In this document: positions 51,256-56,594 of the stretch, piece by piece
Numbering within the stretch: the stretch's first letter is position 1
Layout of the letters: each line of letters opens with the position of its first letter
Assembly (NCBI GenBank): GCA_907165135.1
Contig: OU015568.1
Location: forward strand, 9,052,001 to 9,116,000
Direction: 5' to 3'
Length of the DNA stretch: 64,000 nucleotides
DNA from: Oikopleura dioica
Taxonomy: Eukaryota > Animalia > Chordata
Notes under the pieces: model-generated
What the model was told of the DNA's origin: nothing
Databases searched by the model: none
What the model saw: the letters and a program-made list of their open reading frames with translations, nothing else
Made by a program: the position numbers and the translations under genes

Positions 51256-52730
51256 TTACTTTGGGGAAGAGATGAGAGTTCCATGGTTTTCGACATCAGC
51301 AACGTCCGCAATGGCGACTTTCGAACCGTAACCATAGGCAACTCGGCAATTAATTCCATCGCCAGTTTGCTGATATCGCCTAAAAATTTTTCAGCCGTGT
51401 TTTCAAACCTAGATTATCTTACACTTTATCGGAGCAAACAACGCCGCTTGAAATTTCAGAAACGACGGCCAAATCGGTGCTGATTTTTTGGTCTTTGACT
51501 TTGAAGACGTTTTTGTTGCTTCCGCCAACGAGGAAGGAATCGGTACCGACGAATTGGGCCGTGTAGTAGGAACTTCTTTCGTCTGGGTGCTCTAGAATTA
51601 GTGTTGGGAGGAGTAGAGAGAATGAATTTCGTTACCGAGAATAGTTTTGCGAAGGGTTCCTTCTCGATAGTCCCAGACTTGGATTCCATCATGTCTTCGC
51701 CAAGAAGCGGTCTAAAAAGCTATTAAAAGAGGTCTTAGTTATTATTTTTACCAAAATCGTCTGGTCGTTGGGGTCAATGTCAATACTCTCGCCGCAGATG
51801 TGAGGACCGAAGATGCGTTTCGTGGCGCGTTCCTGTCTTCGGTCCCAGAACTGAACGGTATCGTCCCATCCGCCCGAGACAAAGTTCCAAGTTTCATTTG
51901 GATGATGCTTTAGGGCGTAGACTGCGGTTCGGTGTCCGTCCATGCGCTCCAATGATGGAGAAGCTTGGAATGAATTAAGAAGGGAAAATGGGATAAAGGG
52001 TACCTTTGCAAGTATTAATTTTCTGCAGAGAAGCGAGGTCATAAACATGGATGTCAGAATCTTTTCCAGCTGTGATGAGAGCATCTTGCGTTGGGGTGAC
52101 CATAGTTTGGTAAACTGTTCGATCTTCTTCGATTGTTTGCAAGCACTGGCTGTTACTGACATTCCAGACCTGAAAATAATCATTTTCAATTGTACGATAA
52201 GCTTCTTTAACGATTGCCCATTTACAGCCTCTAATCTGCTATTTTTTGTTTGGCCAATCTGCAACCGGATAAGAATATTCGTTTTTATAAGAATAAGCTG
52301 TAGAATCGAAATAGACTCACCTTGATTTTTCCATCACAATATCCAGCGACAAGTTTATCTTCATTTATCCAGTGGCAAGTAACTGCTGGTAGATTTTTCT
52401 GTCTTGTGTCTGTATCAACTAGATTGTGGAGTTTTCGTCCGTCCGAAATGCGGTAAATGATGACCAAGCCCTTGTTGGTGCAGATCGCAATGAGTTTTTG
52501 GGAAGGACTCACTTTGCAGCAGAAAACGTCGTCATTACAGTCACTACAAATTTGATTAATTATTTTATACTTTTGATACTATTAGCTTACATAATGTGTG
52601 AAATTTGAATTCTTCCTTCGATAATCTGTTTTCCCTCTTGAATCAGTTCTTCTTTCTGTCCCTCGCCAGTTGCATTAGGCATTGGCGACTTGATCTTTGG
52701 TATCTCTGGCAGCGGCTTGATTGCGTTCAT
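51256..52730 (-). CDS. WD40-repeat protein, family not assigned
   Basis: GHRTAVYALKHHPNETWNFVSGGWDDTVQFWDRR..IFGPHICGESIDID; VTCHWINEDKLVAGYCDGKIK; multi-exon. Confidence 0.8.
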
Positions 52731-53107
52731 TTTCTGATTTCGAAAAACTCAAACTGAAATCAGGTTTTAAAAAATGGCCAAAAACACTTTGGCCGACAAG
52801 TGTTCTAGAGATTGTGAAACACTCATTCAACTCAAGTTGTTTATAAAAGGGAGAAAGTATACTAAAGGATACTTGACGATTGAGATTATTCAGAGCATGG
52901 GAGAATAGATTTTTTGCGTCAATGACGATGAGTTCACTTATTTCAATCTATGCAACAGTGCTTTTGACACTAACGCTTCTCTCTTTTTAGACTGGTCGCA
53001 TTTTTACGCCCTCACGTCGTTCCATTACTCACTGAACGTCGTTTTTGTGACGTCACGAGACTTCTCTGGATTCCACACTCGCCGCGGGGGAAGACAGAAA
53101 AGAAACA

Positions 53108-55527
53108 ATGTATCGAGCAACTGTGGGAACGGGCAAGACGTTACTCGGTACTTTGCCTTTTACAGCTCAAATGGTGAACTTGCGGAAAAATCGTGATTTT
53201 ACGAAAATTGAAGATTTACGATGGTTATCTCCAAAAGTACAAATGTGAGAAGAACAGTAAATTGACGGAAGTGGAGAACTTCATGCGCTGTGAGAATTTT
53301 CTCCATGGAGGTAGAAAAAACCCCAACGAATAGTTTCCCCAAATCTTTGTTTTAGTAGTTGAAATTCCAGAAATTGCAAAAAGCGAGCGAATCTACCGTC
53401 ACGAAGCTGGTCATCTTCTCATTATACTCCTTCATTTTGAGTCTCTTTCCGTCTTTCCAGCCCTCGTCTCTTTCCAAAAACGCGCAGATCTAAAGCTCAA
53501 CGCTTACATAAAAGTCGTCGATCTCCCAGAAACGGGCAAGAAGACCTCGACTTCTGACGAAGAAAAGTTCAAGAGCTGGATTTTATATTCCGTCGCTGGG
53601 AAAGCCGCGGAAGCAGTATTCAATGGAACTGAAGGAACAACAGTTTATTCCTTATTGAAAAGGCTCCAGGAAAAAACGAATTCACGTGACCTGCAAATTG
53701 CTCGAATGTACGCATCAAAGGTAGATAAAGTTTTATTAAATAGGTTTAAGGCCGGCATAGTATCTTAATTGTTCCCAGCAGCAAAATTGAATCAGAGCAT
53801 ACGGTCCAAGTCGCGCCCATTGAGCAGAAAATCCACGGAAGAATCCCAGCGGCCCATTCGTTTTCAGAATGTAGCTTAGAGCTGGAAACAAACCGTTAAA
53901 CTTCCCAGGGTTGGTCATTATCACAGTTCTGGCATTCGTAAATGGCGAGCTTAAAATGTTCTTTTCATATTTGTTGAAAAAATGTCGCTGAACCTAGAAC
54001 AAGTGATAGCAAAGCCAGTAATAATCGCTGTGCAGAAAATCAGTCCCAATCGCTCAGCCTCGCTTGGTGCAGAATTATGACCGTAATTGTCGTAATCGCT
54101 ATCTTTCCACGAATGTAAAAATGGAAGAAAATTCTGGAGGGAGGACGACTTCATCGAGTTTTGATGATGATCGGGTGTTTTCTTGAGGAAATCTTTGACT
54201 TCGTTGTAGACGGCTACGTAGGTGATTCCAATGCTTTCGTGGGTTAAGTTTTTCCAAATATTGGCGTTGAAACCATTCAAATGTCAACCCTTTTTCCTCA
54301 TTGCTCTAGTAACACTTGTTCCAACACCTTCATAATAATTCGCCCATCTCAATGACACCGTTTGTTTTATATTATCCACCCGTTTTTTGAACCCCTCTAG
54401 AAAAGGGATGAGGACATCCTGAGATTATTTTAACCCCCCTACGCCACAGAATAGACCTTTACCTCTTATTTTAGCTGCATTGAGGCACTGTATGATGTCT
54501 GTACTCCGAGTCCATAGACTCCCCAAAAGGGGTCAAAATGAGCGAAATCGGGTTTTTCCGGCTTAATGACGTCATAAGTCAAAGAACATGTGACAATAAC
54601 TTTTTCTAAGTACCCCTACGCCACAGATCAGACCCTAAGCTACATTCTGGTAGTTTAGGGAACCCTCTGTGATAACTGTGGTCGGAGAGCATAGACTCCC
54701 CAGCTTGGGTTAATATAAAACAAACGGTGTCAATGGACTTCCCCCGACTTCCCTCGCCAGTTTATAAAGCGGTGGTGGTTTTCCTTGATAACCCTGCGCT
54801 CTCACTTTGAAAAGGTCGGTCGGATGCGCTATTGTCGCGGCCAGTCCAGCGGCGGTGGCACCTGCTGCCATTCTCGAAGCAATTCGCTGAATATCGGATT
54901 CCTTGTTGATCCCACGCTCAAATTGCTCCCGGAAGGGTTCATACAAGCCGAGTCGAAGAGATGAGTAGATGAGTTCTCGAGCCAGGGAAGCAGTAATTCC
55001 TCGATACCAGCCAGAAAACCCCTCTTGAACTATGATGTCTTTCATGACAACGGGAAATGGTCGCACTTGCCCGCGATTAGAGATTTGTTGAAAAACCATC
55101 GCAGTTTCAAAGGGCTACAGTCGTTATAGAATTTACTGACAAAATGGGAGATTTACATGGACGCATAATCCAGCAGTTGCGCAGGATACACCCGCTAAGC
55201 CGATGTTCAGGACTTGCTCTTGATTCATCCTTGCGCTACGTCATAACTAGAGAACATTCATTTTCCAAACATCTCTGAAAACTTCGCTGATCTAAATTCT
55301 AGAGAGTCCTCTTAAAAAAAGATTAATTTTAAATTATTCATTTAAAATCTTTATTCTAGCTCTCCGACGACGAAACGAAGCAAGAAGAAATCATCGCTGC
55401 CAGTTTTTATCAAGCAATAAAAGAAATCAAGGCGAACGAAAGAAAATACGAAGTCATCTTGGAAGCTATAAAGAAAAACAGCTTCATCACAGCATCTGAA
55501 ATTTTCAAATTATTCGAAGAGCTTTAA
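53108..55527 (+). CDS. Stand-alone FtsH/M41-type metallopeptidase domain protein (no AAA domain)
   Basis: YRHEAGHL (53400-53414), SVAGKAAEAVFNG, NSRDLQIARMYA|intron 53721-55359|LSDDETKQEEIIAASFYQAIKEIKANERKYEVILEAIKKNSFITASEIFKLFEEL*; exon phases are consistent. Not in the ORF track. Confidence 0.72.
53736..55228 (-). CDS. Mitochondrial carrier (SLC25, UCP/dicarboxylate-like), nested antisense in the M41 gene intron
   Basis: GWYRGITASLARELIYSSLRLGLYEP, IAHPTDLFKVRAQ, GPLGFFRGFSAQWARLGPYALIQFCCWEQLR. Confidence 0.88.
54434..54702. repeat. Two diverged ~90-bp direct repeats in the SLC25 intron
   Basis: ACCCCTACGCCACAGA...CATAGACTCCCC at ~54434-54530 and ~54612-54702. Confidence 0.55.
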
Positions 55528-55564
55528 TTCTAGTGTAGCGAAATTTAAAGTTCTTTTTTTAAGA

Positions 55565-56594
55565 ATGAGTAAAAGAAGAATCGAAAAGTTCTTGTTGAAT
55601 TATTTCGAAAGCAACAACTATTCAGAAACGCTAAAAACCTTTCAAGATGAAATCAAAGAAGAAAACACTGAGACTCGAATTTTGAGCTTCAAAATCATTA
55701 AAGCTCCGAAAATAATCGTCGATATCGAGGAGAAGAGAAAGAAATCAAGAAAGAAAGAGGAAGTGAAAATTCCAAAAGAATTCAAAAGAATAGCGAAAAG
55801 AGCTGGAATTCCAAAAGATCAATTCGAGTTTTTCTACGAGCATCGGGAGAGCTTTAACTGGGAGCTTTTCAAACCTACAGGTAAAGAGAGGATCCATGCA
55901 AGGCCAAATTGTAATTTTAAGTCTACTGTACTGTCTGCAAAGAAACATCAGAGCACTACAACTTCTGCTTCACCCAGCACATGAAAGAAAAGCACAATTA
56001 CAGTGACACTCCTTGCAACTTCGCTGACTGCAAATTTGTCGCCAACTCGGAAAGCTCGTTGCTCAGACACCAGGCGAGCTTCCATGGAATGGGAAAACGA
56101 AAACCCTCTGCTCGGGCTTGTCTCAAGTGCAAATATCCATCTTGTAATTATCAGGCCTCGATTGATTATGCGCTGCAGAGGCATTACAGTATTCATGAAA
56201 ATAGGAGCGCGGAATGCTATCTTTGACACGGGTTCTCAATCAAATTATCTGACTCAGCTAAAATCACTGAAATCAACAACGAATATTAGATTATTCCCAG
56301 TCGTGTTCAGTTAGCACTTTTTATCTCAAAAATTGGTAACCCAAATTTACCTCAACGCGAATGTGCAACGCGCTCAAGTTTAAAGATCACGTGGCGGCGC
56401 ATTTCAACATCACCGACTTTGATTGCAACTTCTGTACGAAAAAATTCACCAGCAATGTAAAGCGCAACGCTCACGAGCGCGCCTCTCACGGGACTTTTAT
56501 TTGCACCGATTGCGGTCTCGATTTGAAGACGTCTTCGAAATTCAACAAGCATCGGACAAATTGTGAAGAAAGAAAAAAGGCCTTTATGCAATGA
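55565..56594 (+). CDS. LisH-like N-terminus + multiple C2H2 zinc fingers
   Basis: IEKFLLNYFESNNYSETLKTFQDE (LisH pattern); CNFADCKF..LLRHQASFH, CKYPSCNY..LQRHYSIH, CNFCTKKF..NAHERASH, CTDCGLDL..KH. Confidence 0.72.

Follow-up and report, generated by a model that had tools for sequence, protein, structure and literature searches.

The gene and its relatives

The DNA we analyzed is a 64-kb window of the Okinawa assembly of the planktonic tunicate Oikopleura dioica, OKI2018_I69 (64.3 Mb, 19 contigs; G000:C1:9052001-9116000), and our subject is a plus-strand gene of four exons at window positions 53108-55527. We conclude that its product is a soluble protein of ~26 kDa made up of a short basic leader, a ~30-residue relic at whose end stand the helix and hinge glycine that connect AAA module and protease in FtsH, and a complete, compacted M41 protease domain of the FtsH type, and in this identity and architecture our confidence is high. 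The exons were defined from the three forward frames, read over 52990-53760 and 55330-55540, and from comparison with a related metagenome contig, L008. An exhaustive protein search returned an exact match of the product to the O. dioica database protein OKI2018_I69 PAR g10970, which exists in two forms, g10970.t2 (P0003, CAG5085701.1; 230 aa), on which all full-length analyses were run, and g10970.t1 (P0008; 231 aa). The spliced open reading frame (ORF) of ~230 aa that the original prediction had proposed at this place is thus identical to the g10970 protein. The gene, which is single copy, is already annotated, yet as an unnamed hypothetical protein. The annotation was produced by AUGUSTUS with intron and exon hints from RNA-seq (PMC8008620), which is an indirect sign that g10970 is transcribed. 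Giving a name to a hypothetical protein that lies beyond Pfam classification is useful in itself.

Exon 1 (53108-53173) holds the start codon and a basic leader of 22 aa that lacks acidic residues (MYRATVGTGKTLLGTLPFTAQM), which matches P0003 and is the short basic N-terminus that had been predicted; the 22-codon frame and its LPFTAQM end are kept in L008 and in a second contig, L011, with changes that are synonymous. Intron 1 (53174-53213; 40 nt, GTGAAC...TTGAAG) is demanded by P0003 (M|IYDG) and has a counterpart of 47 nt in L008. The end of exon 2 (53214-53310; IYDGYLQKYKCEKNSKLTEVENFMRCENFLHG) aligns with the AAA-lid/hinge helix and hinge glycine of FtsH. Intron 2 (53311-53355) is 45 nt long, or 48 nt if the alternative acceptor at 53357-53358 is used, and this tandem TAG|TAG acceptor (53354-53355 vs 53357-53358) accounts for the sole difference between P0008 (VV) and P0003 (V). 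A splice from 53245 into exon 3 was also considered and was rejected, as the frames are incompatible and the comparison with L008 gave introns of 40 nt and 45 nt. Exon 3 (from 53356, or 53359, to 53720) corresponds to residues 55-175 of P0003 at 100% identity and carries the M41 core, that is, the HEAGH helix, a beta hairpin, the GKAAEA helix and the SRDLQIA helix. Intron 3 (53721-55359; 1639 nt) has its GT at 53721 and its AG at 55358-55359, and exon 4 (55360-55527; residues 176-230) encodes the C-terminal M41 helices and the stop codon. The junction of 53720 to 55360 is supported because the homologs on two other contigs, L012 and L095, are intronless at the exon 3/exon 4 boundary (...YAAK-LSSNPAEQQ...), because exon 4 is kept in L008, and because exon 4 gives confident C-terminal helices in the predicted structural model described below, which agrees with the typical terminal helices of the original prediction.

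Our exhaustive HMMER search of 1.84 billion representatives found only g10970's own family, and a subsequent word search based on the family profile found 17 members in three clades, all of them on contigs from marine metagenomes, with introns that are small. On two of the family contigs the flanking TM9SF and SSRP1 genes are 91% and 68% identical to those of O. dioica, and the contigs most likely belong to other oikopleurids; so far, the family is known only from Oikopleura-like (appendicularian) DNA. One apparent relative, P0006 (1714 aa, HMMER E 2.6e-4), was discarded as spurious, having no Pfam domain and a match of only 38 residues. Across several lineages the frames of all four exons are open and the neighborhood is shared (Mcm10, the WD40 gene, the nested carrier gene and the LisH gene). 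When exon 3 of the window is compared with that of L008 or L011, the ratio of nonsynonymous to synonymous substitution (dN/dS, Nei-Gojobori) comes to 0.13-0.15, the synonymous sites being saturated, and the comparison of L008 with L011 gives 0.29; exon 2 differs from those of L008 and L011 at proportions of 0.16 of nonsynonymous (pN) and 0.77-0.96 of synonymous (pS) sites, and the leader evolves faster. To judge from these comparisons of sequence, g10970 is a genuine gene under purifying selection.

The members of one clade, b (L095:4151-6040 and L012), differ from O. dioica in the positions of their introns, with none at the K|L junction and one instead after ...EQQNIM, and the donor after exon 1 in L095 may be non-canonical. 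Exon 1 of L095 also contains a CPGLSLEDY that recalls the AAA-lid motif TPGFSGADL, a likeness without statistical support.

The M41 domain and its active site

By the evidence of profiles and structure, residues ~58-230 of P0003 are an FtsH-type M41 domain, diverged to an identity of ~16-24% with other domains of this type. The first indications came from its relatives and from exon 3. Two relatives, P0004 (18.0 bits, E 0.0028) and P0005 (23.6 bits, E 5e-5), match M41 as their sole Pfam family at scores below the PF01434 gathering threshold of 29.9 bits, and a third, P0012, carries a weak precomputed PF01434 match. When exon 3 was compared by phmmer with all sequences of the PDB, the single match was the protease domain of Aquifex FtsH (2di4), at an E of 0.52 and with HEAGH and G-x-AAE in register. 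Stronger matches were obtained with profiles. A family profile of 10 rows matched FtsH entries 2di4, 6gcn and 4ww0 of the PDB at E 8e-4 to 2e-3, with further FtsH entries near E 1, and when a 14-row family alignment was compared by hhalign with an alignment of 12 bacterial FtsH sequences and two O. dioica paralog exons, the two aligned over residues 42-150 at 95.6% probability (E 1.1e-8); a second hhalign run, at full length, gave 91% probability and E 1e-6 over 214 columns. Other comparisons with the PDB were uninformative: a three-sequence family profile found nothing useful there, and phmmer with full-length P0003 or exon 4 matched nothing but designed helical repeats, attributable to compositional noise. 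A narrow hidden Markov model (HMM) of Bacteroidota FtsH scored the family weakly, so that profile-profile comparison was needed.

The predicted structure leads to the same family. Exon 3 alone with three sequences gave an unusable AlphaFold model (predicted local distance difference test, pLDDT, of 46.5), and the full-length model was used instead, for which AlphaFold2 was run on P0003 with the 10-row family alignment. In this model pLDDT is ~80-94 over residues 60-230 and 82-94 over exon 4, with low confidence for the first 59 residues. All of the top 50 Foldseek matches in the PDB are FtsH, YME1, AFG3L2 or FtsHi (best E 4.8e-5). By VIA-align, residues 59-229 of the model superpose on residues 413-603 of Thermotoga maritima FtsH (3kds_E) with Z 16.6 and a root-mean-square deviation of 3.1 Å over 150 residues, and 22 FtsH-family entries have Z scores of at least 12.5 (range 12.5-16.6) while the next unrelated fold has a Z of 5.2. 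The structural alignment with FtsH extends to residue 230, and we regard the assignment of the predicted model to the M41 fold as firm. Together, the family profile, the hhalign comparison and the predicted fold bear out the FtsH-type M41 domain that had been claimed for this locus; the lack of an AAA module and of a transmembrane anchor, claimed with it, is supported by the sequence features given below.

Two of the motifs on which that claim was founded are in place. HEAGH (53400-53414; residues 69-73, with H69, E70 and H73) was read from the sequence, aligns with the HEAGH of FtsH and is kept in all four relatives that reach the region (L008, L011, L012/L095 and L013). GKAAEA (53598-53615, or 53595-53615 as AGKAAEA) is invariant across the family and aligns with FtsH GGRAAE, its E139 being the counterpart of the conserved Glu in FtsH GGRAAEE. 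The candidate for the third zinc ligand is D165 (53688-53690, in SRDLQIARMYA), which is invariant in every family member, including those of a newly found clade of many members. It heads a helix of the FtsH pattern D-phi-x-x-A-x-x-phi-A, and the length differences within the family fall just before it, as expected for the loop that precedes a ligand helix.

In its domain the g10970 protein shares with FtsH, YME1L, AFG3L2 and SPG7 (MEROPS M41, PF01434) the fold, HEAGH on the equivalent helix, the G-x-AAE helix, the D-L-x-x-A helix and the C-terminal helical bundle, and shares with them also the linker helix and hinge glycine that come before the domain. It differs from FtsH and the mitochondrial AAA proteases in having no AAA+ module or transmembrane segments, in scoring below the Pfam threshold, in an insertion of ~11 residues before D165, and in the restriction of its family to appendicularian-like genomes.

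Absence of a motor, probable origin and possible functions

In the entire 64-kb window, whatever the frame, there is no Walker A, Walker B or second-region-of-homology (SRH) motif, P0003 has no match to Pfam AAA or AAA_lid, and the M41 domain is preceded by 54 residues. That there is no room for AAA exons upstream, as the original prediction had maintained, holds good as well: a divergent WD40 gene on the opposite strand starts at 52730, ~380 bp from exon 1, and L011 shows the same order of Mcm10, a minus-strand ORF and the M41 gene. A GTGKT in exon 1 might be taken for a remnant of Walker A; it is absent from L008 and L011 and is due to chance. The distant homolog on L095 begins ~600 bp from a divergent SSRP1 gene and has a short basic leader of its own (MVAIVYRNSYKLKIGVTALKVRAK...), which makes the AAA-less state ancestral for the family. 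Residues 1-60 contain no hydrophobic segment, hence no N-terminal transmembrane anchor; the sole hydrophobic 19-mer, with a Kyte-Doolittle value of 1.94, spans residues 74-92 and is the core helix/strand right after H73. The three O. dioica-type sequences begin with leaders that contain 2-3 Lys/Arg and no Asp/Glu and are rich in Ser, Thr, Ala and Leu, a composition typical of mitochondrial presequences, and the protein is probably mitochondrial. Such an arrangement of an M41 domain with neither AAA module nor anchor is not otherwise described in animals.

What event could have led to a protease domain of this kind? The original prediction had offered two, truncation after duplication and horizontal transfer. 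In the hhalign comparison, residues 42-54 (ENFMRCENFLHG; EFIDSMEDIISG in clade b) stand opposite FtsH DFNDAIDRVIGG, which is the last AAA-lid helix and the hinge glycine preceding the protease domain. As the significant alignment begins in the AAA-lid/hinge helix, precisely the leftover to be expected of a truncation, we favor the 5′ truncation of a duplicated AAA-protease gene over gene transfer, for which no bacterial donor was found by HMMER. A relic of the lid was also sought upstream of the hinge helix, where no similarity is demonstrable. The canonical AAA-M41 genes of O. dioica sit on other contigs, an AFG3L2-like gene on C2, a YME1L-like gene on C4 and a third on C5, and since all three persist the stand-alone gene is an extra copy.

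The third of these genes deserves mention in its own right. This C5 paralog (locus L002, G000:C5:~7881300-7883100, minus strand) has AFG3L2 as its best PDB match (E 2e-31) and intact Walker A, Walker B and SRH motifs, and in it HEAGH is replaced by LEAGK ('AILAALEAGKCVVSW'). It reads AALEAGKCV where AFG3L2 has AYHxAGHAV, so both zinc histidines are lost, and it is possibly an SPG7 ortholog. It appears from these motifs to be an animal counterpart of the FtsHi pseudo-proteases of plants. The plant and algal FtsHi proteins (of the Ycf2-FtsHi motor), three entries of which (8xks, 8xqw and 8xku) are among the best fold matches of the AlphaFold2 model, resemble the g10970 protein in that they too belong to the FtsH lineage and no longer have ATPase and protease coupled. 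They are also its opposite, for in them the AAA motor is retained and the zinc site gone, whereas in the g10970 protein the zinc motif is retained and the motor gone.

The explanation we prefer for g10970 is that the 5′ part of a duplicated mitochondrial AAA-protease gene would have been removed in an appendicularian ancestor, that the basic leader would import the protein into mitochondria, and that the protein may be a zinc peptidase that acts there on peptides or unfolded chains independently of ATP, possibly in the form of a ring assembled through M41-M41 contacts such as isolated FtsH protease domains form. Being motor-less, it would be incapable of unfolding or extracting substrates. In the FtsH complex it is the protease disc that is rigid. 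Isolated FtsH protease domains still form rings, and M41 domains oligomerise via their own surfaces (PMC9020784). Considered as a whole, with identity, architecture, origin and mechanism together, we judge this explanation to be moderately probable; the mechanism taken by itself is put forward tentatively. Of the original prediction, the identity and architecture are thus supported, and an active ATP-independent protease or regulatory subunit, as well as its place in mitochondria, are proposals.

Several observations weigh against it. To our knowledge M41 domains are normally fed by an AAA ring, and an unaided role would be without precedent. Scans of the individual exons and of P0003 with Pfam and NCBIfam gave no M41 match, only noise, and a PF01434 scan of the O. 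dioica genome returned the three canonical loci and missed g10970; in this formal sense the g10970 protein has no Pfam M41 HMM hit, which on the original prediction's own terms would speak against it, a result that we consider overruled by the sub-threshold relatives, the profiles and the fold. The N-terminal 58 residues, compared by hhalign with the FtsH lid on their own, aligned at E 0.62 and in another register. The hhalign and MAFFT alignments give a near-gapless register in which the third-ligand Asp of FtsH falls opposite L153, and under this register zinc binding could be impaired; in either register an FtsH loop of ~30 residues after the Asp helix is missing. The third-ligand DL motif of the original prediction is made plausible by the invariance of D165 and its fit to the helix pattern but not by the automatic alignments, and on balance we think it somewhat likely that D165 is the third zinc ligand.

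An alternative that we consider unlikely, though it survives better than the other two weighed here, is that the protein is a non-catalytic or regulatory M41-like subunit that docks on, caps or co-assembles with the ring of a canonical m-AAA or i-AAA protease and would modulate such complexes instead of cutting substrates. The capacity of M41 domains to oligomerise through their own surfaces (PMC9020784) would serve such a subunit, there is doubt about the third ligand of the stand-alone protein, the FtsHi proteins of plants exemplify M41 domains maintained in roles other than proteolysis, and there is a possible link to the C5 m-AAA paralog with its intact AAA module and LEAGK in place of HEAGH. 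However, three divergent clades have strictly retained HEAGH, E139 and D165, and such conservation would be puzzling if the protein neither catalysed nor bound metal. A dead SPG7-like subunit, for its part, can pair with AFG3L2-like subunits that are active, with no further partner required.

If g10970 does encode an active peptidase, as we prefer, there are two bolder forms that its action might take: a self-assembling, ATP-free ring in the mitochondria of appendicularians, or one half of a 'split' AAA protease, the catalytic one, acting in trans with a motor such as that of the C5 paralog. We rate the chances of this pair of proposals as low, and the partnership with the C5 paralog in particular is speculative. 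Were either true, it would be a mode of action of M41 not described in any eukaryote. In the textbook view a protease chamber is useless without its motor, and every characterised eukaryotic M41 protease that we know of is fused to a membrane anchor and an AAA+ unfoldase. The g10970 family has long kept its catalytic motifs under selection with no motor attached and therefore constitutes a natural experiment on what M41 does alone, be it peptide clearance, partnership in trans or regulation. It also illustrates how the fast genome evolution of Oikopleura remodels mitochondrial quality control, the same genome holding an m-AAA paralog whose zinc site is dead.

A second alternative concerns origin, namely that a stand-alone M41-like gene was transferred from a bacterium or phage and gained its introns later, and did not descend from an animal AAA protease. 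Small M41-like domains without AAA do exist: the best fold match of the model in the ESM Atlas is a bacterial cluster of 159 aa with a template-modelling (TM) score by target of 0.80, 38% of whose members carry PF01434, the second is a phage cluster of 300 aa, a feature search also gives bacterial clusters of ~210 aa, and a Vibrio cholerae protein of 125 aa (5iqj) matches at Z 12.2. In addition, the best PDB sequence matches of the family are bacterial FtsH and not YME1 or AFG3L2. We nevertheless find transfer quite improbable. Among the 1.84 billion representatives, HMMER found no bacterial relative at E≤0.001, these stand-alone proteins (~159-300 aa in the ESM Atlas clusters) show no sequence relationship to g10970 by HMMER, and 5iqj is 11% identical. 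The g10970 protein has, unlike them, an AAA-lid/hinge relic, introns and a eukaryotic leader. The inclusion of the lid/hinge helix and hinge Gly in the FtsH alignment points to an ancestor that was fused to AAA, three introns and synteny are kept across lineages, and the VIA-align Z scores are tied between bacterial and eukaryotic M41 domains. The stand-alone proteins are themselves uncharacterised, and we know of none with a known function.

Least credible by far is an artefact of annotation, in which the M41 exons would belong to a longer AAA transcript by way of distant 5′ exons or to a decaying pseudogene. Trans-splicing and operons do occur in Oikopleura, but a trans-spliced leader contributes nothing to the coding sequence, the window holds no AAA motif, the ATG and leader are kept in L008 and L011 while the L095 homolog has an independent short leader, and the gene is single copy, open in all exons in several lineages and at a dN/dS well below 1.

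Nested and neighboring elements

Nested antisense within intron 3 (53736-55228, minus strand) is a mitochondrial-carrier (SLC25) gene, complete in itself and no part of the protease gene. Its identity is clear from a Pfam Mito_carr match at E 3.8e-15 for 54710-55099, and a Mito_carr gene is nested at the same place in L008. Inside the carrier gene lies an element (54350-54735) resembling a miniature inverted-repeat transposable element (MITE), with 28-nt inverted terminal arms (54350-54377 and 54708-54735) that are 93% complementary and that enclose an internal direct duplication with a spacing of 177 nt.

The next gene on the same strand starts 38 nt past the stop codon of the protease gene (window 55527-55565) and follows it in L008 also. 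It has a weak N-terminal match to LisH, below the Pfam threshold, and Cys/His-rich ORFs lie downstream. The spacing of the protease and LisH genes is operon-like, as is typical of Oikopleura.

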